Both the position numbers and the translations under genes were made by a program. 64,000 nucleotides of DNA, from NCBI GenBank assembly GCA_904063045.1, contig CAJFCJ010000001.1, positions 3,224,001-3,288,000 on the forward strand, given 5' to 3'. This document shows positions 24,874-49,135 of the stretch, piece after piece. Within the stretch, counting starts at the first letter, position 1. The number at the start of each line of letters is the position of its first letter. A model generated the notes under the pieces. That model was not told the origin of the DNA. It made no database searches and saw nothing but the letters and a program-made list of their open reading frames with translations. The stretch comes from Dimorphilus gyrociliatus (Eukaryota; Animalia; Annelida).

Positions 24874-25845
24874 TTAAGAGTATCTTGAACCGGCAATCGC
24901 ACAAGACAATAAATCTTTAAGTCTCTTTCTAAAAGTTCTACTTAAAGTTGTGTAAATTAGAAAACTACAAGCTGCGTTGACATTGACTAAGAATTTACTT
25001 ACGTGATTTAAAATATAAATTACATCTAAACATTCCTCACGTTCAACAGTGTTTCTCATTAAATGATAAATTGCAATGGGAAATTGGCAAACTATCGTTG
25101 TAGCTACAACAATCAACAAAATAATTGTTACTTCATTATTCGGTTTAGCCATTCTTTTCTTTTCACTTTCGGCCATATGCGTAAATTGGTTATTCATCTC
25201 CTTAGCTCTCTTTTGTTGAAGAACAAAGACAATCCGACCGGTGAATAGCAACATAATAACTATCGGCCCAAAAACATAAAATACAGTTACGCTGTAAACT
25301 TTATAGCCGTTATTATAACTTTGAGAGAGGCCGAATGACGTTTTATTTTCTCGGATTGTTCCGTTAACATTCTTAAATTCGTATTCAAAGAATCTTGGGA
25401 GATTAAACATAAGAACCAGCAAAAGGGTTAAACATATATAGATTTTCGTTCGAAATGTTGTCCAAACAAATCTTACTTCCAGAGGTTTACAAATTGCCCA
25501 ATATCTGTTTACCGATATTAGAATGGCTATCCATAAATTATTCATATGGAAAACTGGAATGAAAATCCAAAAGTATCTGATATATGGCCATGTTATCCAC
25601 CATTGAGGGCACATTCGGGTGTATCCGCACCCATAAGGAATTGAATCTACGATTATGACGGTAATCAGTAAAGCAAGACCATTGATTAGAAGCCATTTTA
25701 GTAGGATATTTGCCGAATTTTGTTTACTTTCTTTTGTTTTAGAGAAAACGATAACTGATAGTAAATTTCCAGGTATTCCAATAGCGCAAACGATTGAATA
25801 AAGTATAGTCCATACAATAAACGAGAATAAGCGGCACTTCTCCAT
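24874..25845 (-). CDS. Intronless class A orphan GPCR, FMRFamide-receptor/Srw-like, 323 aa
   Basis: Seven hydrophobic segments; GIPGNLLS (TM1), SVNRYWAICKP (DRY variant), NLPRFFEY (TM4/ECL2 signature of FMRFaR-like receptors), CQFP (TM6), FLIY...FR (TM7/helix 8). Confidence 0.85.
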   Translation of the reverse strand: MEKCRLFSFIVWTILYSIVCAIGIPGNLLSVIVFSKTKESKQNSANILLKWLLINGLALLITVIIVDSIPYGCGYTRMCPQWWITWPYIRYFWIFIPVFHMNNLWIAILISVNRYWAICKPLEVRFVWTTFRTKIYICLTLLLVLMFNLPRFFEYEFKNVNGTIRENKTSFGLSQSYNNGYKVYSVTVFYVFGPIVIMLLFTGRIVFVLQQKRAKEMNNQFTHMAESEKKRMAKPNNEVTIILLIVVATTIVCQFPIAIYHLMRNTVEREECLDVIYILNHVSKFLVNVNAACSFLIYTTLSRTFRKRLKDLLSCAIAGSRYS

Positions 25846-28144: not shown

Positions 28145-30762
28145 ATGAAATATTCTCCTTTCAGAAAAGTCTTTATTGTAATTTTCATGAAATTTTTCAT
28201 TGGGAATAACTGCAATAATATCATTAAACCAGATGTATTTGATGAATATGTTGCAATTGAAAGCATGGATGGGGATATTAATATTGCTGTTTTAGTTCCT
28301 GCTTCGAGAGACGCTTCTAATCTATTGTGTAATCCCAAAACGTCCATTGTTAGAAAGATATTCATAGAATACGTCTATTTCGTAAGGAAGAACATTGATG
28401 AAATAAATAAGAATAAAGATTTTCTTAAGAATGTTCGTCTTGGGTATGTGTTTATGGACACTTGTACTCTTCAGTCATCCGCTTTGAAACACGCTTTAAA
28501 ATTGATTCCACGAAATGAAAATTCAAACGAAAATTGCAACGAAAGTAATTCCGGAATGGCTTATTACGATGTTCAAGCTGTAATATCTGGTGCGGGAAGT
28601 TCTGAAACATTACCACTGGCAAATATTCTTAGTAGATTTTCGATACCTATACTAAGTCCATTCGCGTCGAGCGATGACCTAAGCGACAAAGCACGTTATG
28701 AATATTTTTCCCGTTTGATAAGTCCCGACAAATACCAAGCGGACGCTTTAACCGATTTTCTATTAGAATTTCAATGGAATTATATATCGTTAATTTTTTT
28801 AGAAGGTAGTTACGGTGAAAATGGAGCAAAACAAATTAGGAAACAAGCAAAGAAAAAGTCAATTTGCATAGCCATTGATGAAATGATTTCTACCGAGGAT
28901 TATAAAGCAGATGTAATAAGAATAGTTAAGAAACTTAAAGAGAACAAGAAAGCTAGAGTTATAGTTGCATTCCTTTTTATTACAGTGGCCGACGAATTTT
29001 ATCTGATGATGGACAAGTTTGATATTGCCAAAGAAAAAATAGTTGTAGGCTCTGACGCTATGATATATGCGAGAACACCTCGTACAGTTCAATTAAGGGC
29101 TATTAATTCTTTCGGTGTCACAACAGCTGGTAAAGATGTTAAAGGTGGTTTTCAATATTTCTCCGATTTGAATCCGGCAAACAATTCATCTTTTCTATTG
29201 ATAAAAGATTATTGGGCCAGTTTATTCGATTGCTCTTGGTCTAATAATGCGACAAATCCATGCGATCCTCATAAGAATTTTACTCTTGCTAACGTCTCTA
29301 TAGAAGCCACTGCGAGTTTCAACGATTGTCTAATGGTTTTTGTTCAAGCTATTGATAGAATAATTAAGAGAAATTGCCCAAATGCTACTGGAGTGCAAGT
29401 AAGGAAATGCATTAGGGGTAGGATTTTCCTAGATGAGATAAGAAAAGGGACATTTGAAACGTCTCAGGGACAAATTCAATTTGATGAGAAAGGAGATGTT
29501 ATCGGTGGCTATAATCTAGTTCAATTCTTTGAGAATAACTTTGTACAAGTTATTGGAAGTTGGAGTAGAAAGAGGTCGGGTATTGATTTTGTAAGTAATG
29601 TATCATGGTCAGATTCGGATCAACCAAAGTCGCTCTGCAGTGAACCTTGTCCTCCAAAACATTATTTTATCCAAAAGGCAGTCGTTTGTTGCTGGGATTG
29701 CCGAAAATGTCGAAATAATGAAATACTAGTATTAAATAAGACAGCTTGTAAAGAATGTCCTGAATTCTATTGGCCTGATGAAAAGGAAGCGCTAGAATGC
29801 TTACCAATCGATCCGGAATCTTTAAAATGGGCAGATCCCGAAACGATTATTCTATTGTCATTAGCAGTTTTTGGAATTTGTATTTTCTTATCCATCTCCA
29901 TACTAATTTATATAAAGAGAAATACGAAATTAATTAAGGCATCTTCACTTCAATTAAGCTTCATAATACTTATTGGAATTCTATTAAACTTAATAACCGT
30001 TTTCCTCTTCTTAATAAAACCTTCAGTTCCTTCTTGTTCTTTGAGAAGATACTTTTTCAACCTATCAAACTCTCTTATTTATGCCCCTATTATAATGAAA
30101 ACTAACAGAGTGTATAGAATATTTACATCGGCTAGAAAAGGCATTAAATCTATTAAATATTCGGGTAATAAATTTCAATTAATTTTTGTCTTCGTCATTG
30201 TTACTTTCCAGGTAAGCAGCTCACTTTATAGGCCAATGTATCGAATAGATCAATTGCTAATATGGCCTTTATTTATTATTTAATATAGATATTGCTAATG
30301 ATAATTTCAACTATCATTTCACCAAATGAAACGGCTCTCCAACAAAGAATAAAGATTGAACCTCATGTTGAATTGCATTGCTATCTGCCGCTCAAAGGTT
30401 TCGTTCCATGTTTAGCTTATAATATTCTCTTGGCAGGGATATCGTCATATTATGGCTTTTTAACGAGGAAACTACCAGAGAATTTTAACGAAGCGTCTTA
30501 TATTTTTGTATCCGTGTCAACCACATTTTTCATATGGCTAGTTCTACTTCCGGTATATTTTACAACCGAAATTATAAAATATCAATTAATCTTGTTGGCT
30601 GCATCTTGCCTTTTAAATTCACTGATAACACTGGTATGCCTGTTTGCACCTAAATTATACGCCTTATGGTTTATCGATGAGGAACGCTTAAAATTCGCTC
30701 ATACTACATCCTCAAATATTGTACCTACAGCACCTTCAACGATTAACGATAATGAATCGTAA
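28145..30762 (+). CDS. Class C GPCR, mGlu-like paralogue C1 (VFT + Cys-rich domain + 7TM), ~846 aa; exons 28145-30211 and 30289-30762
   Basis: LGYVFMDTC, SDDLSDK, EGSYGENG, CCWDCRKC, KTNRVYRIF, TRKLPENFNEA. Phase-0 intron CAG|gtaagc...tatag|ATA (77 bp). Confidence 0.92.
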
Positions 30763-30970
30763 TTCTTTTCGTAACCTCTTTTCATCTATTGTTTTCTCTC
30801 CTTTATATCATATTTATTAATAATATAGTAGGAAGAATAGGTACGATTTTAATTAGATAATTTCACTTAACAGGTGTTATCTTACCTCGTTCTCTTTTCA
30901 TTTTTCATTAAATAGAAATGAAAGTCGAAATTCTTAGTAAGTAATAAATACGTAGTATGCAGTATTTATA

Positions 30971-31507
30971 CAGTACAGGTACCCTATTTTTAGCCACTTG
31001 TTTTTTTTTTTTTCCAAAAATGAATTTTTCTTTTTTTTGGCCTAAACAAGATGTTTTAAAGAGAAGTTAAAATAAGGACAACTCATCTATCTTTAAGTGA
31101 GATTTATAAAATCTTTGTTTATCACAATAGAAATAAGAAAATTATTGATTTATGCAAACATTGACTAAATTGGTTAATTAAGTAAAAGTAGTAAGTGATA
31201 AATATTCAAGAATAATTTTCACAAATTATCTAATACTGTTACAAAATGACTTTCATTTTTACCATTCGCAACTTCATTATTCTTATTTTAAAAAATATAG
31301 AAAAATCGATTTTAACACCTCATTGATGAAAAGATATATTTTTCTTATCAAGTTTGTATTAAATACAGCTTTTATAATTCTCAAGTAAGGATAGATAATT
31401 TGTCTTCATTTTAATTTCTGGTAAAAACATCTTGCTTAGGCCAAAGTTGAAAAAAAATTTAATTTTCAAAAAAAAAAATGGTGGCCAAAAATAGGGTATC
31501 GGTACTG
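30971..31507. mobile_element. Non-autonomous Tc1/mariner-type element (MITE), 537 bp, with ~130-190 bp imperfect TIRs and TA target-site duplication
   Basis: Left end TA|CAGTACAGGTACCCTATTTTTAGCCAC...GGCCTAAACAAGATGTTTT. Right end reverse complement TA|CAGTACCGATACCCTATTTTTGGCCAC...GGCCTAAGCAAGATGTTTT. TA at 30969-70 and 31508-09. No transposase ORF. Confidence 0.8.
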
Positions 31508-32447
31508 TATATACTATATATAAATATGTATAAAAATTTCTTATTTTGATTGATTGATTGATCGATTAGATGATTGATTAATTGATAGTTATTGGAAAGT
31601 TTATATTAAAACTCTCTTCGTCTCTGTTCCAATGTCATGTCACGAAATTTCATGGAATTTTATCTTCCAAAATACAAAATCCACTCTAGACAAAAAATTT
31701 TCTTTCTATATGTAATTATTATTATAATTATATGCAGAATATGCATTTATGCAAATATACAAATATTCATATATTGACTTCAATTTACAATTCCAAATTT
31801 ATGCCAACTGTAGCGTCATCTGCTGTGTTTAAATTGTACTACAGTTGACTCTATACAATCAAAGTAAGTAATTTTTAACTCTCCTCTTTGTACCATTTCC
31901 CGAAGCAACAAAACCGGAAAATGTATTGTATCAGCTAAAAGTTAGCTTTTCTCTAGAAATATCTTTATCATATCCGGCCCTTTTTTCATTATTCTTTCTC
32001 TTTTGAATGAAAAGAAAGGAGAGAAAAAAAGACAACAACTAAAAAAGTAAAGCATCTTCCAACTTTGTCTTTGTTAAGAGAACTGGGAAAGTAAGGGAAA
32101 TAAAACTATCTATAAATAATAAATACGTAACAAAGAGAAATCAAAGTAAACCAACTGAAAAGAAATCTAAAAAAACAAACTCTTTCCCTCCACAACTATT
32201 TTCTTGTTCCTAAAAAGATAAGGAACGAAGAGGAAATGGAAAGGGAAGATGGATTAATTTACGTATACAATATGCAGTACGAAACATAGAACTGTACTAT
32301 TACAGGTGACTTTTTTAAGATTTAAACTACAAACTACTTGTGCATACATTTCTTACGAAAAGTCGACTATACCGAGGATCGGAGAAGGAGGCCTGACTCT
32401 CTAAATAGAGTAGTACGTTTCTAACAACCCTTCTGATAATTGAAATG

Positions 32448-33400
32448 CTATTTGACAATGCCCATACAGAAACGTAAATTGCTATACTGGTAAAGATAGA
32501 TCACGAAATCACCAGGCTTGTGATGTTTCTTTGAACAATTAATGTTAGCAAAGAAATCTCTTTCTGCGTAAGAATTTGGAGAATGTAAAGATGTATCATA
32601 TTTTTCTGAGCATTGTATAAAATTACCGTTGTTATGACAATCAACTAATAAATGGCCAGTTATTATACAGTTGAAAAATCGTGTAATTTCTACTTTCGTC
32701 TGCTTCGTTTCTTGTAATGCCTTCCTTAACTTGGGATGAAAGCGTGAATTCCAACAATTCTCTACATAGCCTCAATATTCTTTCTTGTTTGACTGTTTAA
32801 AGTTTTTGAGAGATTTGCGTTTGTTCGCTTATTTGTTATTTATGAATGGGTTTTTTCGTCATCCTCTATCAATTTCAATCCTTGCGATAAACTCTCAATA
32901 ACATTTTGAGTCATTTGTTTTATTTGCTCTAGGCCACCACTACTACAACGCTAATTCTGTTCATTCGATTTATTTGCATATTGAAAAACGCTTGCCTTTT
33001 CTATTGAAGTAACTGCGTTAGTTTAGAGAATTTCTGTCTGTCCGGTCGTATGGCCAACTCAATTATTATAAATTATTGCTTAAATTCCACTCAATCCCGA
33101 ATTTTATCCATACTAAAAAGTCTTTTTAAAATGATGATATTTCCGAGACTAGCATCGCAAGTGACTTAGAGAGTCAAAAACATTTCACCAAAGATTTTGT
33201 TAGTACATTGATTTTTGTCTTTCAAGTAGCTTTCTCTATGCCATTTACTTTAAATTTCACCAATTTCATTGTTTAGCATTCCTTCTAGAAAAATTTACCA
33301 ATATAAATTCTTTCGCAGAGCGTTCCCTCTTAGAATGCAGTAGATATCTGTGTTCGTCTGTGAGTCTGGTAGATTTGAGGTTAATTGACACTTCTAATTT
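32448..33400 (-). pseudogene. Decayed coding remnant, possibly retroelement gag/ORF1
   Basis: ATG-poor open frame 32771-32448 (~107 aa) contains RFFNCIITGHLLVDC, a CCHC knuckle with the first Cys lost. Upstream frames are protein-like but broken by stops and frameshifts. Confidence 0.33.
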
Positions 33401-34446
33401 AAATCAATCGTATCTTTGTTCTGATAGTTTGATATGCTGTAATCACATATATATATACAGCATTTTCTGTATATATATTCTATATTACATATTGTTTTCT
33501 TTCCATAAACAGAACATTCTCATCACCTACTCAGAAAACACTATATATATATATACAATTATGTAATATATAATCTCTATAATGAATAAAAAGATTGATA
33601 TAAAGCTTCTATAAGCGGAAGGAATTATTCAGAAAATGACAGTTGTACAAGTTAAAAATAATTTTTAAAGAAATTGTAAAAGATTTCTAAACTGATTTTA
33701 GCCTATTATGACTATTTTTAAGAAAAATTTCTGTTACAGTAGGAGATTGTTCTGAAAATTCTAATTTTATTGTAAAGTAGAAAGGAAATAGAAAGTTTCT
33801 TTCATCAAAAGATGAGCTGCTATTTAGATAATTGAATAATTTCGACAATATGATTTCTCAAAACAGATCTAATAATGAAAATATAGGTGTATAATAAATA
33901 CGAAGAGTTATTAGTATCAATATTAAAACAGTGATATAATATTTTTTCAACTTTGAAGTTCATGGGAAGTTAAGAATAGACGAACAAAACTAGATATGCT
34001 AACCATTTAAGAAATAAATGAGAAAGTTTAACAGGTACGTTGGATAAATATCAGAAAAAAAGCGTGGACATAAGGAAACAGAGTCTAAATTTATCTTTCT
34101 CTTTAATTAGCATTTGTATTAGAAAGAGTAAGAATTAATAAATGAATGCACGAAAGATTTCGACGAGACGAAAAAGGGGATTAAACTACTCTAATTGTTC
34201 TTAAAGAGTTAAATTTTCATAGGTTTTACTATTTATATCTAAGTTTAATTGATGAAATTAAAGAGATTAAACAAAAATATACAGTATATACTGTATATAG
34301 TAAAATAGAATGTTTGAAAGTAGTCACATGACAAAATGAAGTATCAACAAGTAAAAAAATGGTTTAATTACCTGTTTTTTGGATAAAAGAATTATTTTTA
34401 TATATTAAAGTTAAAAAAAGGATTTTCCTTTTATCATAAAGATCAA

Positions 34447-34451
34447 CCAAT
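34447..34451 (+). promoter_or_regulatory. CCAAT box upstream of C2
   Basis: TCAACCAATCAG, 106 bp before ATG 34553. Confidence 0.45.
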
Positions 34452-34552
34452 CAGAATGCATATATTAATACGACTGAGTTGAGACGCACTTTTGTACACT
34501 ATTACATTTCTATTGAAACGAGGATAGAATAACATATTCTTCTTTGAAAATT

Positions 34553-37496
34553 ATGAAAACTTTTCACTTAGTAAGCAAACTCTCTTTGCAGTTGATATTT
34601 TTCCTAATAGCATTCAATTTTGATGAAACGACTCAACTGAATCTTCTGAATGATATCCCAGAAATAAGAGATAATCTAAAAGATATTAACATCGGGGTGT
34701 TATCTGCACTGACTCAACCGACTGGCAATTTACAATGTAATAACTCGCAATATGCAATTAACCCCAGGTTTCTACAGAGTTTATACTTTTTAGAACAAGG
34801 TATAAGCGAATTTAACAAGAATAAAGAACACTTCTTCAACTTTACTATTGGATACGTTTTTATGGATACTTGTAATACTATTGGAGAATCAATTGATACA
34901 TCTCTTAAGCTCATACCAAAAAATGATGAAGTTTACTGTATAAATAATTCAAGTGAAACTGATTATTTCAAAGTCCAGGCTGTTATTGCTCCTACCAGCA
35001 GTTCGGAGTCAGTTATATATTCGCCTATTCTCAGTAGATATCGCATTCCTCATATGAGTCCTTTAGCAACTAGTGACGATTTAAGCGATAAAGAACGCTT
35101 TGGATACTTTTCTCGTATAGTAAGTCCTAATAAATTTCAAGCCGATGCTCTAATTGATTTTATTATCAATTTTCAATGGAATTATATTTCACTTTTGTAC
35201 GTTGAAGGTCCATATGGTGAAAATTTAGCCAAAGTTTTTCGAAAGAATTCAGCCAAAAAGGGTATTTGTATTGCCATCGATGAAATGATTTCTTTAGACA
35301 ATCCTATTGGTGATATAACAAGAGCAATAGAAAATATTCAATCCATTAACAATGCCGAAGTTATAGTGACATTTCTAGAACAAAGAGAAACTCAACTATT
35401 TTACGAACATTTTAGTAAATCAACTGTTAATAATAAAAGGATAATACTTGCTTCCGATGGATTGAGTCTATTTCAAATTCCTTCAATTTATAAGTTAAGA
35501 GCGATAAGGACTTTTGGTATTACACTCCAATATACTCCATTCCCCAATTCAAGGTCTATTCTACAAAACATAAGTCCTCATACAAAACCCGATTTGATCT
35601 ATCTACGAAAATATTGGTCAAGAATCTTTCAATGTTCATGGAATACAACAAACTCTAAATTACCTTTATGCGATCCGAAAGCAAATTTAAGCCAAATAGA
35701 TTTTCAAGTGTCGGGCGATTCACTGGAATATGACTGTTTAACAATAGTAGTTCAGGCAATGAAAAATGTTATTCGTAAATATTGCCCTTCTGTTTCCCGT
35801 AGTGACGTACATCAGTGTCTGTCTGGAGAAAGGCTTTTAAAAGAGATACGAACTGGTTCGTTCAATACAACTCTTGGAAATATACAGTTTGATAAAAATG
35901 GGGATGTTTACGGTGGATATAATCTCGTTCAATATACTCACAACGGTAAATGGAATGTTGTCGGTCGTTGGAGCAGGGAGAAGCCTGGCGTAGAACCTCT
36001 CGAAAAAATCATATGGCCAGAATCATATGTTCCAGTTTCAGTGTGCAGCAAGCCATGTCCACCAAAGCATTATTTTATCCAAAAGGCGGTGGTATGTTGT
36101 TGGGACTGTCGGAAGTGTCGAAACAATGAAATCGTTATTGACAATCGGACTGGATGCGAAGAGTGTCCCGAGTTTTTTTGGCCAGATAGAGAAGCGTTGG
36201 AATGCGTGGCTATAGAAGCTGACTACCTAAAGTGGTCTGATTTTGAAAGCGTCATAATATTAGCATTAGGCATTGTAGGTCTAATTTGCGCATCACTTGT
36301 CTCTTTAATAATGATAGTGAAAAGAAGAGAAAAGCTAATACGAGCATCATCACTTCCTCTGACATCGATTATTCTATTCGCAATAAAGTTGAGTTTATTG
36401 ACAACGTTTTTCTTTCTGATGAAGCCAAGCGATGGAATTTGTGGAGTGAATAGATACCTTTTTAGTATATCGAATACTTTGATATACGCTCCAATAATAA
36501 TGAAGACAAATCGAGTTTATAGAATATTCGCCTCTGCAAGAAAAGGCAATCAAACAACCAAGTTGATCAGCAACCAATTTCAAATTGTTATGGCCATTTT
36601 TATTGTCTTTATTCAAGTGAGTGTTTTTCTTTTCCTTGTTGTTTCTTTCGTTTTTCTTTTTATCATTACTTTTATTTTTTCTTTACCTTTTCCTCCTCCT
36701 CCTCCTCCTTCTTCTTCTTCGTTTACTTTTTTCCTTCTTCCTCTTTTTTTACTTTTTCTTCTCTTCCTTTCCTCCTCCTCTCTCTCCTACTTTCCTTTTC
36801 TTCCCTCTTCTCCTTCTTCCTTTCCTCCTCCTCTCTCTCCTACTTTCCTTTTCTTCCCTCTTCTCCTTCTTCCTTTCCTCCTCCTACTTCTCCTACTTTC
36901 CTTTTCTTCCCTCTTCTCCTTCTTCCTTTTCTCCTCCCTCTCCTTCTCCCTCTCACTCTTCTACTAGCTTAATATAAACAGAATTTATTTCGAGTCATCG
37001 AGTACACTTATTGCTATTCCGCTCCTCTTGTACAAAACAGATGATTTTGATGGTTCTATCGACGATAATATCCGGAAACGAGGCGTCTTTGAAACAAAAA
37101 GTACGAACAGAAGATTATGTGGAATTGCATTGCAACTTACCACTGAAGGGCTTTCTGCCCTGTTTAGCCTACAATATTTTGTTGGCGGCAATATCTTCAT
37201 ATTATGGATTTCTGACTAGAAAACTGCCAGAGAATTTTAATGAGGCGTCCTATATTTTCGTATCAGTTTCAACAACATTTTTCGTTTGGTTAGTTCTACT
37301 TCCAGTGTATTTTACAACCGAAATAACAAAATATCAATCGTTGATATTAGCGGCCACATGTTTATTAAATTCTTTGATTACGCTTTTCTGTCTGTTTGCA
37401 CCGAAACTATATGCCCTGTGGTTCATTGACGAAAATGATATACGATTTGTTTTTACCACAAGTTTGAATAGAGTAGGTGTAAGCTCAGATAAATGA
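34553..37496 (+). CDS. Class C GPCR paralogue C2, ~839 aa; exons 34553-36616 and 37041-37496
   Basis: Same domain motifs as C1; signal-peptide-like N-terminus from ATG 34553. Phase-0 intron CAA|gtgagt...aaacag|ATG (424 bp). The ORF-track tail is intron read-through. Confidence 0.92.
35831..37464 (+). repeat. Near-identical segment shared with 47258-49103 (C2/C5), including the intron
   Basis: About 7 substitutions seen by eye over ~1.63 kb, plus a 212-bp (4 x 53) VNTR length difference. Confidence 0.9.
36771..36929 (+). repeat. 53-bp polypyrimidine VNTR, 3 units (C2 intron)
   Basis: Unit cctcctcctctctctcctactttccttttcttccctcttctccttcttccttt starting at 36771, 36824, 36877 (last is a variant). 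Confidence 0.88.
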
Positions 37497-38436
37497 AGTA
37501 ATGTAAATTAAATGTTAGAGTGAATTGGCGAATAATCTTATATATTCGTTTATATGTTAATTAAAATTTAAATGTTGTAATTATATCAACAGGGACAAAA
37601 TATTGTTAAAATAAAGAAAAGGTTAAAAGGAATTTATTTACAGATAAGATTGATTGAAAATACTGTTATTATATATAATTTTGTACTCGTTTTGTAGCCA
37701 AAGTACACAATTTTAGTTATTAGTTTAAAAAAAACTATATTTTTCATGTTTCGGTTTAATTATATGAGACTCTAATTTATGTTTAAATTATAGAGTCTAT
37801 TGATGATAATAATAATAGTTTACCAATCAAGGTTAATATATCAAACCAGTTTTGTAAGAAATTTGATACTGAGACAGAATTTTAACATTGTTTTCATGAT
37901 CTGGATAAAAAAAAGCACTCTTTCTACTGTTTTAATGTTGGCGATTGGATAGTTTTTGTATTATAGAAAAAAAATCGAACAGTATACTAGAGGTGGTGTG
38001 GAATTGTACATAGAGTATCTAGTTTCTTAAACATGTATATTTAGCTTCACTTGATATATTCTATCGTTGAGGAGAAGCTCTAAGGATCTGTACTTAAATC
38101 AGCTAATAAAGCTAACAGGGGCACTAAGCAGCGGTCTCTGCTGGCGCATATGTACATGTATATAACATAGAGTATAACTGTATATCTTCTCCAAGATACA
38201 ATCAGCATAGTTAAATTGAAATAGATAAAAGCTTTGAATGACTCTGTTAAACACTAAAGAACAATAACATTTAATATATAAATAGATGATCAGTAATAAC
38301 TTTCTCTGTCTAATATTAGAGATAATACAAATATATCTTCTAGTATTCATTTTGAAAAGGAATCTGATGTTCAATATTCATTCAGAGCATCGGTATTTAC
38401 AATTTTTATAACTTTTATTACTTTAATATTTTTTCT

Positions 38437-38441
38437 ATTGG
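38437..38441 (-). promoter_or_regulatory. Inverted CCAAT box upstream of C3
   Basis: Reverse complement TCAACCAATAG, 115 bp before ATG 38552. Confidence 0.45.
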
Positions 38442-38551
38442 TTGAAGAGCAAGCAGGCAAGGAGACATTAACATAAGTTATTTTCTTTTAGAAACAAAAA
38501 GAGTTTCTTTTTGTTAAGCTTCACTTTGTAGAAATCCGACGAGAAGAAAGT

Positions 38552-41212
38552 ATGTTATCTTCAAGAAGTGTTTTCTTATTGTTTGTCGTATTACTCTGCG
38601 TATTTAAGATTTTTACATTTCAAAGAATTTTAAATATAGTGGAAGGAAACTTGGAAAAGAGGACTATTGAAAGAAATGAGGGAGATATAAACATTGCACT
38701 AATGACTACAGTTCATCAATACTTTTCAGAAAAAGAATGTGGTGAAGAAGCCTCGATAGTTAACTTAAAAAATTTGGAAAATATGTATCTTATAAAGATG
38801 GAAATTGATAAAGTTAATAATAATGATACTATATTGCCAAATATCACTATTGGATATATATTTATAGATACTTGTAATATGATCTCGCCAACTGTTAGAC
38901 GGTCAATTGAAATGATATCCAGACCTAAAAATCAAGTTTGTTCTCCACATGAAAATGAAAATAAACTTTTTAATGTGCAAGCTGCCATTATAACGTTAAA
39001 TAGTATATTAGCAGCCTCGGTGTCAAATATACTAAGCGAGTTCCAAATTCCTCAATTAAGTCCAACGGCTACCTCCGACGATCTCAGCAATAAGAAATTA
39101 TACAAATACTTTTCGAGGACTGTTAGTCCTGATCGATACGAAGCTGAAGCGTTAGCAGATTTTATTGTAAACTTTAAATGGAATTATGTTTCTTTAGTTT
39201 ACTTGGAGGGGAGTTACGGGGAAAATGGAGCTAAACAATTTCGAAAACAGTGTGCATTAAAAGGCATATGTATTGCAGTTGATGAGATGATATCATTCGA
39301 TAAATCTCTGGAAGATGTACAAAAAACAGTAAAGAATATAAAAAATGAACTAAGATCAAACATAATTATAATTTTTCTATATCCAAAACAATTGGAAATG
39401 TTTTATGTTACCATGGAGAACGAAAACTTACTCCGAACTAAATATATACTAGCTTCAGATAGCGTTAGTCTAACAGAAATTCCATTAGTCATAGAGAAAA
39501 GAGCGTTAAATACATTTGGTATTGCTTTCAAAACTCAAAAGGTACCTGGATCTCGTGAATATTTAACTAAACTAAATCTGGAAAAACATAAAGATCTATT
39601 ATATTTGAAAACCTATTGGAGTATAGTATTCAATTGTACTTGGGAGAATTTTAATAATTCCACTAAAAAGATTTGTGACCCAAAAGCTGATCTAACCGAT
39701 ACTAACTTTGAACTATCAGCTCATTCCGCAAACCACGATTGTTTTCTTATTTACATAGAGGCTATGAATCGAGTCTTACAAAAATATTGTTCAAGAACTG
39801 TTGGTCTAAACGCTCGTAAATGCTTTACAGGAGAGAGAATACTTAAGGAAATTCGTTCGGGAACATTTCAAACTACAGGTGGAGAGGTTCATTTCGATAA
39901 ATTTGGTGATATATATGGCGGTTATGATATTGTCCAATTTACAGAGAATTCTAAATATAATATAATTGCATACTGGAGCAGAGAAAACAGTATTACTCAA
40001 TTTTATGAGAGAATAATTTGGAGAAATTCTCAAGTTCCTCCATCGACATGCAGCCTTCCTTGTCCTCCAAAATATTACTATATCCATAAGGCAGTAATAT
40101 GTTGTTGGGATTGTCGTCAATGTCGAAATAATGAAATTGTTATTGGCAATCGGACTGGATGCGAAGAGTGTCCCGAATTTTTTTGGCCAGATAAAGAGGC
40201 GTTGGAATGCGTAGCTATTGAAGCCGATTACCTAAAATGGTCAGATTTTGAAACAATCATCATATTAACATTAGCTATATTCGGTTTATTTCTATCTATA
40301 TTAATTACAAGCTTTATCATTTGGAAGAGAAATGAAAAATTAATAAAAGCCTCATCAATTCAGCTAATGGCAATTACACTATTTGGGATTAAACTGTGTC
40401 TTATGTCTACTTTCCTCTTCCTAACAAAACCAAACGACACCGTTTGCAGTTTAAGCAGATATCTATTTAATATCTCAAATAGTTTAATATACGCACCATT
40501 AATTATGAAAACAAATCGGGTGTTTAGAATCTTCTCATCGGCAAGGAAAGGAAATCAAAGTGTTAAATATACCAGTAATCGATTTCAAATGGCAATAACG
40601 CTTGCAGTTGTTCTATTGCAGGTAAATTTATAGATTTTTAATGATCTAAACAGATATAAATCGTTCTGCTATAAAAAGTTATAGATAGTAATGTATAAAA
40701 AGAGTTGGAAGATTTTGCTATTCTATATGTTAAACACCTTACTATCTTAATTACAGGTTGTATTAACCCTCATATCAGCTACTCTGTTTGAAAATAAAGC
40801 CATTCTAAAGCAAAAAGAGAGAACCGAGTCTTATGTTGAACTTCAGTGTTACACTTCTCTGCAGGGATTTATACCTAGTTTAGCATATAATATTACACTG
40901 ACTTCAATTTCATCGTACTACGGCTTCCTTACCAGAAAACTACCTGAGAATTTTAATGAAGCTTCTTATATTTTTGTTTCAGTATCGACAACTCTATTTG
41001 TATGGCTTGTTCTACTTCCCACATACTTTACAACTGAAATTGCTAAATATCAATCAGTGTTGCTGGCTGCAACTTGCCTATTAAATTCATTGATAACATT
41101 ACTCTGTTTATTTTTACCAAAACTATACGCTATTCGATTTATGGACGAAGAAAACTTAAAGATAAAAGTAGTGTCACAAAATACAGTTAATTCACATATT
41201 AATACACGATAA
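38552..41212 (+). CDS. Class C GPCR paralogue C3, ~841 aa; exons 38552-40621 and 40757-41212
   Basis: Phase-0 intron CAG|gtaaat...ttacag|GTT (135 bp). Exon 2 is absent from the ORF track; hand translation gives VVLTLISATLFENK...TRKLPENFNEASYIF...PKLYAIRF...NTR*. Confidence 0.9.
40058..40578 (+). repeat. Near-identical segment shared with 43754-44274 (C3/C4); second patch 40934-41055 vs 44495-44616
   Basis: Both copies are 521 bp with few substitutions; flanks diverge abruptly. Confidence 0.85.
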
Positions 41213-42250
41213 ATTGTACTTTATATAGAAAAACTATAATTGATGTTGTTCCCTTATTTCATTTATCAGTAAATAGAAATAAATAATTCATTTACAATTG
41301 TAGTATGTTACTTTGGATGGTGATGATACCAGGAATCCAATGCTTCAGCAATCAGTTTTCAGAAGATGCTAAATATGTAATAAGGGATGTTGTATTGTAT
41401 ACAATAATGAAATGAGAAGTGAGGAGGTTTACATGTGACAAATTAAAATCTTAAAAGTATGTCTTTATTACTGAAATTCTGTTCAAAATGACTTTATACT
41501 AAAATATTCTATTATTTGCAATTGTCGAAAAAAATCTGAGCGTTAAGTGCGATGACTCTCCAAGTCTTATCATCTTCCAGGTATTACTGATAGTATGCAC
41601 AGTATAAATGATATTTGAGTGCATTTTGCTAAAAGTATGCATTTCTATATTATCTTTTCACATAACTTCATCAAACTATGCCAATTTATAGTTATTATCT
41701 TGGCTTAGTTTTCGTTACAGGTCTGAATAAATAGATTACCATTTCTTACAACGGCTAATTAAGGAGTGTTAACAAGGAATTTAAGTTGTTACTTTTTGAT
41801 TTTCGGAGAAAAAATTAATGCCATCTACTGTATAAAGTGAGAAATGAAAAGTTTTACAATGAAAAATAGACGCGACATCTTTGGTATGATAAAGATTAAA
41901 GGGAAGATAGGCCTGGGAAAACAACAACTGACTATCTTATGAATTCTTTAATACAAAATTTTTAATTTATCTCTATTAGATTGAAGGGGAAAAGATGTTC
42001 ATAGTATTAAATTTCATATTTTATGGTCAAAGAGTGGAAATACATTGGTGTTTCGTTACATGAACAAAAATCCCTAATTCCGTTGATAGTCGCATAGAAA
42101 TTATAATGAATTAATCCATATGGAAAATTAAAAATATGTTAACATATATATATATATATGCAAGGTGTATGTATGTCTATTAAAATTTTACAACTCTTAC
42201 TCTTTAACAAGGCTAGAAAGGGAAAGGAAAAGAGAAGAAAAACAGATAAT

Positions 42251-44770
42251 ATGTTGATCTTAAGGATTCAAGTCATCATTTGCAGACTTTTATATCTACT
42301 TCAAATAATTGAGTGTAGCGGATTGTTAAATATTTTTGAAGAACAAAAAGATCATTTAACCAGAGAGAGAAATGAGGCTCATATAAATATTGGATTGATT
42401 TCGTCTCTTCAACAACAAGTTGACCAATCTCAATGCAGTTTTTTAAATTCAACACTGCAATTAGCGTTTATCGAAGGTATGTATTTGGTGAAAAAAACTA
42501 TTGAAGATATTAATGAAAGTAATGATATTCTACCAAACATAACCCTTGGATATGTTTTTATTGATAATTGTAATCTATTTTCGAAAAGCGTAAGGAATTC
42601 AGTCAAGTTTTTACCAAGAATCTCTAATCAAATTTGTACTAAGAGCGATAAAGAACTGGAATACTATAACATTACGGCAGTAATTCCTACAACAAGTAGT
42701 TCTGATCTTGTTGGCTTCTCAGCGTTATTGAGTCAATTTAAAATACCACAATTAGCAACATTATCATCGAGTGATGAATTAAGCGACAAGGTCAGATTTA
42801 AGTATTTAGTTCGTATAGCTAGTCCAGATAAATTTCAAGCCCAAGCTCTGGTTGATTTTGCTTTAGAACATGAATGGAACTACATTTCTATCCTATATAT
42901 TGAAGGAAGTTATGGAGAAAATGGAGCTAAGCACTTACGGAAATTGTTTGCTAAAAGCGGTATCTGTATAGCTGTTGATGAAATGATTTCATTCGACAAC
43001 TCTATTGAGGATTTTGAAAAAGCATTAAAACTTATTAAAATGCATCCGAATTCAGAGATAATCATTATTTTCCTATATCCTAAAGAAATAAGCCTATTTT
43101 ACAATGCAATGGAAAGGGCTAAACTTTTAAATAAAAAATATATATTATCATCTGATGCATTGATGTATACGGCTATATCAAATGTCGGTAAACAAAGATC
43201 TTTTTATTCTTTTGCTATAGCATTCCAAACAGGAGATGTTCCCTCTGCAAGGCGCAAGTTAACTTCAATAAATCCTACAAAATATCCTAATCTCATATAT
43301 ATTAAACAATACTGGAAATTTTTATTCAACTGTACATGGGATACATCAATAAATTCAACAACTAAACCCTGCGATCCTAATGCTAATCTTAGTTCGATTA
43401 ATTATAAAGTATCAGCTTTATCAGTGGAATACGATTGTTTGCAAATATACGTACAGGCTATGCAGCGAATAGTACAAACGTTTTGTCCTGGTGTTTTCGG
43501 TTCGGATGCTGCTAAATGTATAACAGGAGAGAGAATTCTTCATGAACTTCGAACTGGTACCTTTAAAACTTCCCTTGGGAAAGTTCAATTCGATAACAAT
43601 GGCGATATTATAGGTGGATATAATATTGTTCAGTTCGTCGATGATGAAAAATACAATGTTATTGGCAAATGGAGTAGAGAAAGAGTAGGTGTTGAACTAA
43701 CGAAAGAAATTAAATGGCCTAAATCATATATTCCAATTTCGAAATGCAGTCATCCTTGTCCTCCAAAATATTACTATATCCATAAGGCAGTAATATGTTG
43801 TTGGGATTGTCGTCAATGTCGAAATAATGAAATTGTTATTGGCAATCGGACTGGATGTGAAGAGTGTCCCGAATTTTTTTGGCCAGATAAAGAGGCGTTG
43901 GAATGCGTAGCTATTGAAGCCGATTACCTAAAATGGTCAGATTTTGAAACAATCATCATATTAACATTAGCTATATTCGGTTTATTTCTATCTATATTAA
44001 TTACAAGCTTTATCATTTGGAAGAGAAATGAAAAATTAATAAAAGCCTCATCAATTCAGCTAACGGCAATTATCCTAATTGGGATTAAACTGTGTCTTAT
44101 GTCTACTTTCCTTTTCTTAATAAAACCAAACGACACCGTTTGCAGTTTAAGCAGATATCTATTTAATATCTCAAATAGTTTAATATACGCTCCATTAATT
44201 ATGAAAACAAATCGGGTGTTTAGAATCTTCTCATCGGCAAGGAAAGGAAATCAAAGTGTTAAATATACCAGTAACCGTTTTCAGGTACTGATGGCATTCC
44301 TACTTGTTCTTCTACAAGTTATACTAACGCTATTGTCGACTATCATTTCAAAGTACACAGCTGGTTTGAGACAAAAAATAAGAACTGAATCCTACGTTGA
44401 ACTTCAATGTTCTGTTGCACTGAGAGGGTTTATACCTAGTTTATCTTATAATATTGTCCTGGCATCAATTTCATCGTATTATGGCTTTTTAACTAGAAAA
44501 CTACCTGAGAATTTTAATGAAGCTTCTTATATTTTTGTTTCAGTATCGACAACTCTATTTGTATGGCTTGTTCTACTCCCCACATACTTTACAACCGAAA
44601 TTGCTAAATATCAATCTCTACTACTGGCTGCGACTTGTCTATTAAATTCATTGATAACATTACTCTGTTTATTTTTACCAAAACTATATGCTATATGGTT
44701 TATTGATGAACAGAACTTGAAAATAAGAACGGTATCGCTAAATACAGATAGTTCAGTTGCCCCTAATTAA
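42251..44770 (+). CDS. Class C GPCR paralogue C4, intronless, ~839 aa (in-frame upstream ATG at 42158 possible)
   Basis: Single ORF through all domains. CTA CAA GTT ATA is uninterrupted at the site where the paralogues carry an intron. A hydrophobic signal-like segment follows ATG 42251. Confidence 0.92.
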   Translation: MLILRIQVIICRLLYLLQIIECSGLLNIFEEQKDHLTRERNEAHINIGLISSLQQQVDQSQCSFLNSTLQLAFIEGMYLVKKTIEDINESNDILPNITLGYVFIDNCNLFSKSVRNSVKFLPRISNQICTKSDKELEYYNITAVIPTTSSSDLVGFSALLSQFKIPQLATLSSSDELSDKVRFKYLVRIASPDKFQAQALVDFALEHEWNYISILYIEGSYGENGAKHLRKLFAKSGICIAVDEMISFDNSIEDFEKALKLIKMHPNSEIIIIFLYPKEISLFYNAMERAKLLNKKYILSSDALMYTAISNVGKQRSFYSFAIAFQTGDVPSARRKLTSINPTKYPNLIYIKQYWKFLFNCTWDTSINSTTKPCDPNANLSSINYKVSALSVEYDCLQIYVQAMQRIVQTFCPGVFGSDAAKCITGERILHELRTGTFKTSLGKVQFDNNGDIIGGYNIVQFVDDEKYNVIGKWSRERVGVELTKEIKWPKSYIPISKCSHPCPPKYYYIHKAVICCWDCRQCRNNEIVIGNRTGCEECPEFFWPDKEALECVAIEADYLKWSDFETIIILTLAIFGLFLSILITSFIIWKRNEKLIKASSIQLTAIILIGIKLCLMSTFLFLIKPNDTVCSLSRYLFNISNSLIYAPLIMKTNRVFRIFSSARKGNQSVKYTSNRFQVLMAFLLVLLQVILTLLSTIISKYTAGLRQKIRTESYVELQCSVALRGFIPSLSYNIVLASISSYYGFLTRKLPENFNEASYIFVSVSTTLFVWLVLLPTYFTTEIAKYQSLLLAATCLLNSLITLLCLFLPKLYAIWFIDEQNLKIRTVSLNTDSSVAPN

Positions 44771-45902
44771 GTAGTTTATCCAATGATGTGTTCCTTCTCT
44801 GCATCTTATTTTCATGTTGTTGACTATATTTATTCATAGAGTATCTTAATATTTTATCTTGCCTATTTTACACTTTGTCGAGCAAATACACTAATATTTA
44901 ATGAAGCAATATGTCAATTAAACTTAAGTATATTATTAGATAATTAAACAAATTCTATATTAACAATTTTATTTCTTCGTTTTAGTCGTTTAATGCTCTT
45001 TAAAAATTAAATAATACAGACTTTATTAGATGAAAGTAGCACTATTCTGAAAATATTAACCTAGAAAAGAGGTAAACATGCCATCTACAGTCTATGCTGA
45101 GCTTTACATTTAGTATACCAGAAAAGAGTTAAATAACAGAATTTAAGGTTTTAGTATTTTCTAATGTATCCTTTAAATTGTAATTAGATAGTCTACTGTA
45201 TTCGAAGTTGGCGTAATGAGGAGAGGGAGAATTAAAAAAAAAACTTGGTCTTTGTGATAGCGAGGATGTATAGTTTTTTTAGTTCAAAAATCTAATAAAA
45301 AAGAAAAGAAGAAAGAAAGAGATAGATAGATTGATAGATAGATAGATAGAGGTACGTACACGATAAAGGTAACTAATTCTGTTTTGTATGGTTTCAATAA
45401 TTATAGGTACAAAGACTTGAGAATGTACTGTTACTTCAAAAAAATTACAAGAAAATGATGTATTAATAGCACCAATATATCCGTTAGTATGTATATATTA
45501 ATTTATTTACTGCAGACTGCAAGACGATAGTAGTCTAATGATTTAAATACAAAAGAGAGGGATACCTTACTACTGCATAGTTTATTAATAAAATTCTTAT
45601 TTAAATACAGAAATATAGAGTTCTTTGTAATATTCCAAGAAAATATAATAAAAACATTCACTCTTATTGAAGGTCTTTTTTTAAGCTAGTACAGTATGAA
45701 GTAACACGAAGTTGTGTCTTCTTAGTCTAAACAATTGTATGTATTTAACTCTGCTACATTCTTTATGAATATATTGAAATTACTTTACCGATTTCTTCAT
45801 AATACAGAAGCCGTTTAAATACTGCAAAGATTGTTTTAAGTATAGTAGAAAGAACATTGAAGGAAATAATAAAACACTTGGTGATATAAGCAAAATAGTC
45901 AA

Positions 45903-45907
45903 CCAAT
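45903..45907 (+). promoter_or_regulatory. CCAAT box upstream of C5
   Basis: TCAACCAATAG, 83 bp before ATG 45986. Confidence 0.45.
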
Positions 45908-45985
45908 AGCAAAGTATTAAACAACTCAACGCTCTCACTCTGTCTCTCTGTCTCTCACAAACTCTCTATCATCTTCTTGGTTAAC

Positions 45986-48900
45986 ATGTCAAGATTTATC
46001 CTGACCATAATTTCCTTCCACTTTATTCTTCAATTAATTCATTGTCTAAGCATCAAGAGGATTCAAGATAATAGTAAAATAATTACAAATGAAATTCAAT
46101 TAGCGGATATTAACATTGCGGTCTTGTCAACTGTTAGAGAACAGCCTTCAAAAAATAGCTGTAACGTTAAAAACTCTGCAATCAGCTCAAGATTCTTACA
46201 GAGCTTATATCTTGTAAAGAAAGGAATCGATGATGTTAATAGAGATGATAGTTTTCTTCCAAACATAACAATTGGATATGTTTTTATCGATACCTGTAAT
46301 TTGGTACCAAAAACTATTAAACATTCCGTTCAATTAATACCAAGAGTTAACGATCAAACATGCTCAAAGAGTAACCAAGAAATGGAGTATTTCGACATTC
46401 AAGCTGTAATTGCTTCAATAAGTAGTTCTGAATCAGTTCAATTATCATCTTTATTAAGTAGATTCAATATTCCTCAAATAAGTCCCATGTCAACAAGCGA
46501 CGATTTAAGCGATAAAGTAAGATATGAATACTTTACTCGAATTGTTAGTCCAGACAGATTTCAAGCTGAAGCTCTAACTGACTTTATCCTGGAATATCAC
46601 TGGAATTACGTATCAATACTATTTATTGAAGGAAGTTACGGAGAGAATGGAGCAAAACAACTGAGAAAATTGTCTTCCATAAAAGGCATTTGTATTGCTG
46701 TTGATGAAATGATCTCTTTGGATAATTCTATCGAAGATATAGAAAAAGCTGTAAAAAAAATTTCAAACCATCCTAATGCCGAAATAATTATCATATTCTT
46801 ATATCCAGGAGAAACAAAGATGCTGTATGATCAATTAGAAAAAGCCCAGCTTCTCAATATTAAATATGTTTTAGCGTCTGATGGAATGAGTTTTATTCAA
46901 ATACCAAGCGTTCTAGAAAAACGCGTATATAATACTTTCGGTATAGCTTTCCAGTATCGAAATGTTCCAGGATCCTTTGAGTTTCTAACAACTATAAATC
47001 CTGTAAGAAACCCAAACCTTCTTTACATAAATGATTATTGGAGTAGACTCTTTGATTGTACTTGGGAGAGAAATAATAACACTTCAAAAAAACTATGCGA
47101 TCCAGAAACAAATCTTACAGCAGCAAACTTTCAAATTGCAGCTGACTCTTTGGAATACGATTGCTTTCTTGTATTAATTAAAGCAATAAATAGAGTGATT
47201 CAAAGATTTTGTCCTGGTATATCGAGATCGAAAGTTCGAAATTGTGTGACTGGACAGAGGCTTTTAAAAGAGATACGAACTGGTTCGTTCAATACAACTC
47301 TTGGAAATATACAGTTTGATAAAAATGGGGATGTTTACGGTGGATATAATCTCGTTCAATATACTCACAATGGTAAATGGAATGTTGTCGGTCGTTGGAG
47401 CAGGGAGAAGCCTGGCGTAGAACCTCTCGAAAAAATCATATGGCCAGAATCATATGTTCCAGTTTCAGTGTGCAGCAAGCCATGTCCACCAAAGCATTAT
47501 TTTATCCAAAAGGCGGTGGTATGTTGTTGGGACTGTCGGAAGTGTCGAAACAATGAAATCGTTATTGACAATCGGACTGGATGCGAAGAGTGTCCCGAGT
47601 TTTTTTGGCCAGATAGAGAAGCGTTGAAATGCGTGGCTATAGAAGCTGACTACCTAAAGTGGTCTGATTTTGAAAGCGTCATAATATTGGCATCAGGCAT
47701 TGTAGGTCTGATTTGCGCATCACTTGTCTCTTTAATAATGATAGTGAAAAGAAGAGAAAAGCTAATACGAGCATCATCACTTCCTCTGACATCGATTATT
47801 CTATTCGCAATAAAGTTGAGTTTATTGACAACGTTTTTCTTTCTGATGAAGCCAAGCGATGGAATTTGTGGAGTGAATAGATACCTTTTTAGTATATCGA
47901 ATACTTTGATATACGCTCCAATAATAATGAAGACAAATCGAGTTTATAGAATATTCGCCTCTGCAAGAAAAGGCAATCAAACAACCAAGTTGATCAGCAA
48001 CCAATTTCAAATTGTTATGGCCATTTTTATTGTCTTTATTCAAGTGAGTGTTTTTCTTTTCCTTGTTGTTTCTTTCGTTTTTCTTTTTATCATTACTTTT
48101 ATTTTTTCTTTACCTTTTCCTCCTCCTCCTCCTCCTTCTTCTTCTTCGTTTACTTTTTTCCTTCTTCCTCTTTTTTTACTTTTTCTTCTCTTCCTTTCCT
48201 CCTCCTCTCTCTCCTATTTTCCTTTTCTTCCCTCTTCTCCTTCTTCCTTTCCTCCTCCTCTCTCTCCTACTTTCCTTTTCTTCCCTCTTCTCCTTCTTCC
48301 TTTCCTCCTCCTCTCTCTCCTACTTTCCTTTTCTTCCCTCTTCTCCTTCTTCCTTTCCTCCTCCTCTCTCTCCTACTTTCCTTTTCTTCCCTCTTCTCCT
48401 TCTTCCTTTCCTCCTCCTCTCTCTCCTACTTTCCTTTTCTTCCCTCTTCTCCTTCTTCCTTTCCTCCTCCTCTCTCTCCTACTTTCCTTTTCTTCCCTCT
48501 TCTCCTTCTTCCTTTCCTCCTCCTACTTCTCCTACTTTCCTTTTCTTCCCTCTTCTCCTTCTTCCTTTTCTCCTCCCTCTCCTTCTCCCTCTCACTCTTC
48601 TACTAGCTTAATATAAACAGAATTTATTTCGAGTCATCGAGTACACTTATTGCTATTCCGCTCCTCTTGTACAAAACAGATGATTTTGATGGTTCTATCG
48701 ACGATAATATCCGGAAACGAGGCGTCTTTGAAACAAAAAGTACGAACAGAAGATTATGTGGAATTGCATTGCAACTTACCACTGAAGGGCTTTCTGCCCT
48801 GTTTATCCTACAATATTTTGTTGGCGGCAATATCTTCATATTATGGATTTCTGACTAGAAAACTGCCAGAGAATTTTAATGAGGCGTCCTATATTTTCGT

Positions 48901-49135
48901 ATCAGTTTCAACAACATTTTTCGTTTGGTTAGTTCTACTTCCAGTGTATTTTACAACCGAAATAACAAAATATCAATCGTTGATATTAGCGGCCACATGT
49001 TTATTAAATTCTTTGATTACGCTTTTCTGTCTGTTTGCACCGAAACTATATGCCCTGTGGTTCATTGACGAAAATGATATACGATTTGTTTTTACCACAA
49101 GTTCAAATAGAGTAAGTACAAGTACAGCGGAATAG
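45986..49135 (+). CDS. Class C GPCR paralogue C5, ~837 aa; exons 45986-48043 and 48680-49135
   Basis: Same motifs; phase-0 intron CAA|gtgagt...aaacag|ATG (636 bp). Confidence 0.92.
48198..48568 (+). repeat. 53-bp polypyrimidine VNTR, 7 units (C5 intron)
   Basis: Units start at 48198, 48251, 48304, 48357, 48410, 48463, 48516 (last is a variant). Confidence 0.88.

Follow-up and report, generated by a model that had tools for sequence, protein, structure and literature searches.

Five tandem class C receptor genes in the annelid Dimorphilus gyrociliatus belong to an unclassified metabotropic glutamate receptor-like clade and are likely blind to glutamate

The genome of the annelid Dimorphilus gyrociliatus contains a tandem array of five genes for class C G protein-coupled receptors (GPCRs). 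The array lies in a stretch of 64,000 nucleotides (assembly GCA_904063045.1, contig CAJFCJ010000001.1, positions 3,224,001 to 3,288,000), which is referred to here as the window and is AT-rich, with a GC content of ~30%. The genes are named C1 to C5 in the order of their positions and occupy 28145-49135 on the + strand (Table 1). Pfam searches and tblastn searches with C4 found these five class C GPCR genes and no more. Matches to ANF_receptor, which corresponds to the Venus flytrap (VFT) domain, to NCD3G and to 7tm_3 are above the Pfam gathering score in all five genes (5e-49 for ANF_receptor in C1). The match to 7tm_3, the seven-transmembrane (7TM) domain, is divided between both exons in C1, C2 and C5. 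The second exon of C3 was located by tblastn to C4 and three-frame translation. All analyses were made either on single exons (1 or 2) or on the intronless C4.

Table 1. Positions of the receptor genes, homogenized tracts and upstream class A GPCR open reading frames (ORFs) in the window. CRD, cysteine-rich domain; TM, transmembrane helix; aa, amino acids.
Feature	Position	Strand	Description
C1	28145..30762	+	exon 1 28145-30211 (VFT, CRD and TM1 through to the start of TM4); intron 30212-30288; exon 2 30289-30762 (remaining 7TM and short tail); ~846 aa
C2	34553..37496	+	exon 1 34553-36616; intron 36617-37040; exon 2 37041-37496; ~839 aa
C3	38552..41212	+	exon 1 38552-40621; intron 40622-40756; exon 2 40757-41212; ~841 aa
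C4	42251..44770	+	single exon; 839 aa from the Met at 42251
C5	45986..49135	+	exon 1 45986-48043; intron 48044-48679; exon 2 48680-49135; ~837 aa
Gene-conversion or chimeric tract in C2	35816..37475	+	97-99% DNA identity (blastn), intron included, to C5 47243-49114
Second homogenized tract, in C3 (CRD to TM3)	40043..40587	+	97.4% identity (blastn) to C4 43739-44283
Class A GPCR ORF	13702-14595	+	7tm_1 1e-37; match from profile position 67 only, probably a later exon
Class A GPCR ORF	24874-25845	-	7tm_1 2e-19

C1, C2, C3 and C5 each contain one phase-0 GT..AG intron, of 77, 424, 135 and 636 nt, respectively. The intron site is common to the four genes and is located after the same Gln codon in early TM4. 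The DNA of C4 corresponds exactly to the spliced form, and the intron of its four paralogs is precisely absent. Since this intron is kept in the four paralogs and in the C1 orthologue described below, its precise loss suggests conversion by cDNA or retroposition in place. Each of the ten exons has an open frame, and the splice sites are canonical. The preliminary description of this locus, which was made from the sequence by eye, stated that all five ORFs are intact. The frames are open, but four of the genes have two exons and only C4 is a single ORF.

The introns account for several irregularities in the list of ORFs. The introns of C2 and C5 contain the same 53-bp CT-rich minisatellite, with 3.4 copies at 36762-36942 in C2 and 7.4 copies at 48189-48581 in C5. 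The exon 1 frame runs on into these introns, for ~120 extra open codons in C2 and ~190 in C5, much of it over the minisatellite. The list therefore shows ORFs of 807 aa for C2 and 879 aa for C5. The 135-nt intron of C3 is in frame and holds stop codons, as seen in the three-frame translation. The 3' part of C3 is fragmented in the list, which hinted at a frameshift and a pseudogene. This was refuted by an intact, in-frame exon 2, which has no early start codon, and by the splicing observed in this gene.

Splicing was observed in contigs from a public run, X1, at the C3 and C4 region. In one contig, 40618 is joined directly to 40754, so that the GT..AG intron of C3 is left out (cut +3). Transcript-like contigs are found on C4 at 42740-44499. 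In both genes the contigs sit on exons only, and none is found in the 1.4-kb spacer between them (intergenic 41300-42700 is skipped). Because the contigs are confined to exons, skip the spacer and contain a spliced junction, the run was taken to be transcript-derived. Both C3 and C4 are therefore transcribed, and the splicing of C3 is as predicted.

Selective constraint was estimated with an orthologue of C1, which has the same two-exon structure and was found in a Logan contig of a related organism (SRR23372229; L001). The dN/dS between C1 and this orthologue is 0.12 (0.13 in the VFT, 0.09 in the CRD and TM regions), indicating purifying selection. Overall, the dN/dS values range from 0.12 to 0.26, which indicates constraint. 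These data bear on whether the genes are decaying, non-functional duplicates, or whether their near-identical halves are an artefact of assembly. In favour of this, C2 and C5 share 97-99% identity in their 3' halves, and the public gene models of both are shortened. However, the open exons with canonical splice sites, the transcripts of C3 and C4 and the low dN/dS of C1 all argue for functional genes. The C2 and C5 tracts also differ by scattered substitutions and by 4 minisatellite copies, as two real loci would. We consider decay or misassembly very improbable.

The public models just mentioned are DgyrCDS822 (P0056, 605 aa), which matches C2, and DgyrCDS823 (P0003, 594 aa), which matches C5. 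Both GenBank proteins lie on one 3.6-Mb contig. The models break off in TM1 or just ahead of it, close to where the 7TM domain starts. For DgyrCDS822 the truncation was deduced from the 605-aa length and from the end of the match at about query residue 563. The end of DgyrCDS823 is a mis-spliced tail, and this model lacks a 7tm_3 match. Because both models are shortened and that of C5 has lost 7tm_3, surveys of GPCRs in the Dimorphilus genome would probably miss C2 and C5. The consecutive numbers 822 and 823 for C2 and C5 suggest that C3 and C4 are possibly unannotated publicly.

The closest relatives in the Protein Data Bank (PDB) are mGlu3, mGlu5 and mGlu1, with E-values of ~1e-101 in HMMER searches, with CaSR and T1R2 further away. 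The VFT of C4 was modelled with AlphaFold (AF2) from a 74-sequence alignment, and the model has a pLDDT of 94 and a pTM of 0.92. It shows the bilobed Venus flytrap fold. In Foldseek searches, its top matches are the agonist-bound ligand-binding domains of mGlu5, mGlu8, mGlu3 and mGlu1 and that of CaSR, with TMq values of 0.80-0.85. A model of the C5 VFT made from a single sequence reached a pLDDT of 37 and was discarded. The metabotropic glutamate receptors (mGluRs) mGlu1-8 are thus the best match in both sequence and fold, and C1-C5 share their VFT-CRD-7TM architecture. Inspection of the 7TM translations by eye shows the TM3 Lys, the Glu of 'NFNEA', the TM6 Trp and the PKxY motif. A Cys is found in the loop that bears the inter-protomer disulfide of mGluRs, according to the translations and hhalign.

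C1-C5 also differ from mGlu1-8. Identity is ~25-27%, the equivalents of R78, K409 and R323 are absent, and the genes are located outside the canonical mGluR clade. The C-terminal tails are ~22-33 aa long and end in -NES, -SDK, -NTR, -APN and -TAE. None is a class I PDZ ending and Homer motifs are also missing, in agreement with the short tails noted in the preliminary description.

An exhaustive HMMER search with C4 gave 7045 matches, from which 150 representatives were chosen. Trees were calculated with FastTree (n=165) and with IQ-TREE under LG+C20 (n=62). In both trees, mGluR classes I to III together with a pair of class IV sequences form one clade, and C1-C5 are located in a separate one. 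The clade containing C1-C5 has an SH-like support of 99 and includes sequences from Owenia, Capitella, Lottia, a chiton, snails, a bivalve, nemerteans, Priapulus, hemichordates, amphioxus, a starfish and a crinoid. C1-C5 do not fall within the clade of classes I-III. Neither are they orthologous to vertebrate CaSR and V2R, which both lie outside the mGluR-like group that holds C1-C5 in trees with the root imposed on these two and with no T1R, GPRC6A or OlfC included. The trees place the cluster in a large, unclassified, pan-bilaterian, non-vertebrate mGluR-like clade outside classes I-IV.

Invertebrate 'metabotropic glutamate receptor-like' genes of this clade are 31-37% identical to C1-C5. 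They include Owenia CAH1779070, Capitella CAPTEDRAFT_99819, Lottia LOTGIDRAFT_145056, Liolophura XP_064615664, Tubulanus XP_074657414 and Priapulus XP_014665419. All are automatic annotations for which no study was found. Many database relatives have the length of exon 1 (~690-750 aa), which hints at a wide conservation of the intron position across the clade. Compared to these genes, C1-C5 represent an expansion of their own, with a loop before the first helix that is three residues longer. Four further database proteins, P0057, P0058, P0060 and P0064, are 2500-3900 aa long and contain 7-12 flytrap-like stretches; an example is a 'CASR protein, partial' of Polypterus senegalus. They look like tandem receptor arrays that were merged by automatic annotation.

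Residues of the binding pocket were assigned by HMMER against mGlu3 and mGlu5, by MAFFT alignments of 35 and 192 sequences and by profile-profile alignment with hhalign. They are given in mGlu1 numbering and in the order C1-C5, and the residue six positions ahead of a conserved Asp/Asn was taken as K409. The three approaches agree on the proximal contacts and on K409. The proximal amino-acid signature (Ser165, Thr/Ser188, Asp208, Tyr236 and Asp/Glu318) is present in all five receptors. S165 is Ser in every receptor, T188 reads S,T,T,S,T, D208 reads D,N,D,D,D, and Y236 and D318 are conserved as Tyr and Asp throughout. The distal pocket varies between paralogs. K409 is replaced by A,G,A,A,A, the residues at S186 are F,L,T,L,M and those at E292 are F,E,Y,Y,Y, and the equivalent of R323 is non-basic in all five. 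The proximal residues and the substitutions at K409 are as the preliminary description had read them by eye.

The assignment of R78 depends on the placement of three residues. A conserved Cys and the 'IN' motif lie 26 residues apart in C1-C5 versus 23 in mGluRs. Pairwise HMMER alignment interrupts the helix with a gap of three residues, so that R78 is matched to F,F,N,F,F, the residues listed in the preliminary description. The 192-sequence MAFFT alignment and hhalign locate the three extra residues in the preceding loop instead, which changes R78 to Y,S,N,G,S. The loop placement preserves the hydrophobic periodicity of the helix and fits the 'Q-Y/F-V-E-A' motif of the nearest relatives. In the AlphaFold model this region is one continuous 19-residue helix that ends at 'IN', which is compatible with the loop placement and not discriminating alone. 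On these alignments, we take Y,S,N,G,S to be the better assignment. The earlier one is three residues off, and its conclusion that the residue is non-basic holds. Under either alignment all five receptors have lost the Arg78/Lys409 clamp that holds the gamma-carboxylate in glutamate-binding mGluRs, and neither places an Arg or Lys at 78 or 409, on which the preliminary description had staked its view.

The substitutions suggest that the receptors of the cluster are likely blind to glutamate. A residue close by complicates this picture. Position 74 is I,R,K,A,R in the better alignment, so that C2, C3 and C5 carry an Arg or Lys at the mouth of the distal pocket. The equivalent residue is Tyr in mGlu1 and Arg64 in mGlu3, with the identity taken from the HMMER alignment. 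In group II mGluRs, the agonist's distal carboxylate is contacted by Arg57 and Arg64. C2, C3 and C5 might then still bind glutamate or another acidic amino acid, with Arg/Lys74 acting in place of R78 and K409. Residues 78 and 409 are highly variable in the clade, often with Tyr or Phe at 78 as in the invertebrate genes listed above, and some of its basal members retain R78. One Owenia protein (P0135) retains R78 as well as a Lys in the K409 segment, which would agree with binding of acidic ligands. However, the equivalents of K409 and R323 are gone in all five receptors. In addition, the loop at position 74 contains the 3-residue insertion, which makes the equivalence uncertain, and a lone basic residue is unlikely to give mGluR-like affinity. 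We therefore regard binding of acidic ligands by these three as improbable. The claim in the preliminary description that the receptors appear unable to read glutamate is supported by the loss of R78 and K409, and Arg/Lys74 makes it less certain for C2, C3 and C5. The distribution of R78 and K409 in the clade fits a stepwise remodelling of an ancestral glutamate-type pocket.

A similar residue pattern is known from another group. Ramos-Vicente et al. (2018; PMC6307864) defined mGluR class IV (DmXR/mangetout), which was found in all bilaterian phyla examined except vertebrates. In this class, R78 and K409 are non-conservatively replaced and the backbone contacts are kept (PMC6307864). The fly receptor of class IV is unresponsive to glutamate according to Mitri 2004, as cited in PMC6307864. 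C1-C5 have the functional hallmarks of class IV: the alpha-amino-acid contacts are conserved, Arg78 and Lys409 are non-basic, and the receptors are predicted not to bind glutamate and possibly to bind another amino acid. Both groups are absent from vertebrates. The pattern itself is thus not new, as the loss of R78 and K409 with a kept alpha-amino-acid pocket was already the hallmark of class IV, although our genes lie outside that class.

Since C1-C5 share the residue pattern that defines class IV, they could be its annelid members. The trees argue against it. The two class IV representatives that were available, P0027 (Panonychus) and P0192 (Centruroides), were picked by the helix signature of the paper, '..PQGGIQALEAML(F/Y)T(I/L)D.IN..'. 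Both of these 'PQGGIQALEAML..' sequences fall inside the canonical mGluR clade, whereas C1-C5 are located in a different clade and lack the 'GIQxLEAML' helix signature. An approximately unbiased (AU) test under LG+G4 with 40 rows rejects the union of C1-C5 with class IV (delta lnL 160, p-AU 5.7e-39). Furthermore, the Capitella and Lottia genes of class IV in the paper, CapteG168165 and LotgiG133010, differ from those nearest to the cluster, CAPTEDRAFT_99819 and LOTGIDRAFT_145056. Neither of the latter two belongs to the four genes that PMC6307864 included for each species. Class IV is represented by one or two genes per genome in the 2018 data set, where no tandem array was described, compared to five tandem genes with gene conversion here. 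Membership in class IV is thus extremely improbable, and the literature search found no paper describing the clade of C1-C5, or class C chemoreceptors in annelids, in the library that was covered.

Comparison of the paralogs revealed that the sensor and transducer parts have evolved differently. The VFT domains are 38-52% identical between paralogs, while the CRD and TM regions are 58-99% identical, reaching 99% for C2/C5 and 93% for C3/C4. This agrees with the divergent VFT domains and conserved 7TM cores of the preliminary description. The C2/C5 tract begins ~45 codons past the K409 site, so that all pocket residues are located in the divergent part. For C2/C5, dS is 0.015 in the CRD and TM regions and ~2 in the VFT. 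The equivalent values for C3/C4 are 0.18 in the transducer and 1.8 in the VFT. C5 groups with C3 and C4 in the VFT tree (89/94) and with C2 in the tree of the CRD and TM regions (97/100). C5 is chimeric, and the array has undergone gene conversion or chimeric duplication that spared the ligand-binding cleft.

C1-C5 and the C1 orthologue from the related organism are monophyletic with 100% support; C1-C5 with P0004 are also monophyletic at 100%. The next relative of the array is DgyrCDS4786 of Dimorphilus, which is located on a different contig. The expansion is therefore lineage-specific, as the preliminary description had proposed. The first split among the five genes is older than the divergence from the organism of SRR23372229.

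The best overall explanation of these data is that C1-C5 are functional, lineage-specific class C GPCR paralogs that arose in the dinophilid lineage through local tandem duplication and would close on ligands of the alpha-amino-acid type other than glutamate. Taken as a whole, we consider this explanation probable. Each protein is composed of a Venus flytrap sensor, a cysteine-rich stalk and a 7TM transducer, an architecture seen in the domain matches. The Cys in the dimer loop suggests that the receptor would be a disulfide-linked dimer. The flytrap would close on a small ligand with an alpha-amino-acid group, held by S165, T188, D208, Y236 and D318. The distal cleft, in which R78, K409 and R323 of mGluRs clamp the gamma-carboxylate of glutamate, is rebuilt with small, polar or aromatic residues that differ between paralogs. 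This suggests that the ligands are not glutamate read in the way of mGluRs and that they probably differ among paralogs. The likeliest candidates would be L-amino acids of the neutral or aromatic kind, or related amines. Signals would be transmitted by a conventional class C 7TM domain, as a transducer common to the five.

Several points weigh against this explanation. The RNA data come from the only public run found to cover the locus, a small one with an unrecorded library type and no tissue information, and they concern the C3 and C4 region. The dS between paralogs is saturated (~2 or undefined), and is thus uninformative on diversifying selection in the cleft. C2 carries Asn at one of the proximal contacts, and the basic residue at position 74 makes acidic ligands possible for C2, C3 and C5. 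The pocket was read from sequence alignments, and its ligands are predicted.

The function of these receptors may lie in external sensing. In this case they would be taste- or smell-like chemoreceptors, each tuned to a different free amino acid, located in ciliated sensory organs and forming an annelid analogue of OlfC, T1R and V2R. V2R and OlfC clusters are tandem arrays with divergent VFT domains. The array described here, with fast-diverging sensors and homogenized transducers, resembles this pattern. In C1-C5, as in CaSR, GPRC6A, T1R1/T1R3, OlfC and V2R, the proximal signature that anchors an amino acid is conserved and the distal pocket is variable, which is a functional analogy. The short tails without scaffold-binding endings are also consistent with such a role. 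Just upstream of the array there are two class A GPCR genes (Table 1) with weaker Pfam matches to the nematode chemoreceptor families Srsx and Srw, which is only suggestive. However, five genes are a small repertoire compared to the tens to hundreds of the vertebrate receptors, and CaSR and V2R are the outgroup of C1-C5. The dN/dS values indicate constraint and carry no sign of diversifying selection, with the reservation that dS is saturated. Related functional data concern other branches, and class IV mGluRs are enriched in the nerve cord in amphioxus (PMC6307864). On balance, we consider an external chemosensory role rather unlikely. The preliminary description proposed taste- or smell-like receptors tuned to different amino acids; the distal pocket does differ in each paralog, but the comparison to taste and smell is by analogy only.

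Alternatively, the receptors may act internally as neuromodulatory receptors or as sensors of nutrients or metabolites, as thought for class IV, CaSR and GPRC6A. Their ligands would be circulating or synaptic amino acids or derivatives. The cluster is located in the mGluR-like part of the class C tree. Its clade is found in many bilaterian phyla with several paralogs per genome, suggesting a conserved physiological role, and the purifying selection on the genes points in the same direction. A local and recent expansion with diverged sensors is less expected for housekeeping neuromodulator receptors, and Homer- or PDZ-type motifs such as synaptic mGluRs carry are missing from the short tails. 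We hold the internal role tentatively, as a possible one, and an internal neuromodulatory or nutrient role is at least as likely as a chemosensory one.

Other features were found downstream of the array. An 831-aa ORF with a NACHT domain (6e-09) is located at 56526-59021 on the - strand. Next on that strand comes a 362-aa ORF at 55342-56430, which is leucine-rich-repeat-like by eye and has no Pfam match. The two may be an NLR-type gene or gene pair. A short ORF at 52492-52806 on the + strand contains a bacterial-type SH3 domain (SH3_3, 3e-07) in this animal genome.

The clade that contains C1-C5 is absent from the class I-IV scheme of 2018. Its members are publicly labelled 'mGluR x-like', and most of them lack the residues that read glutamate. 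The genome and body of Dimorphilus are tiny and tractable, and, if the reading given here holds, the five compact genes with at most one intron would provide an easy entry point for de-orphanising the clade. The array might also be the first recognisable class C chemoreceptor family in lophotrochozoans, a set of external amino-acid sensors that arose independently of OlfC and T1R from a fifth branch of mGluRs. We regard this as doubtful. If it is true, the sensors would diversify for each amino acid while gene conversion keeps a common transducer, possibly permitting heterodimers. The cluster is a clean natural example of modular receptor evolution, in which the sensors have reached saturation of synonymous divergence, the transducers of the C2/C5 and C3/C4 pairs have been kept alike by conversion and one intron has been lost.

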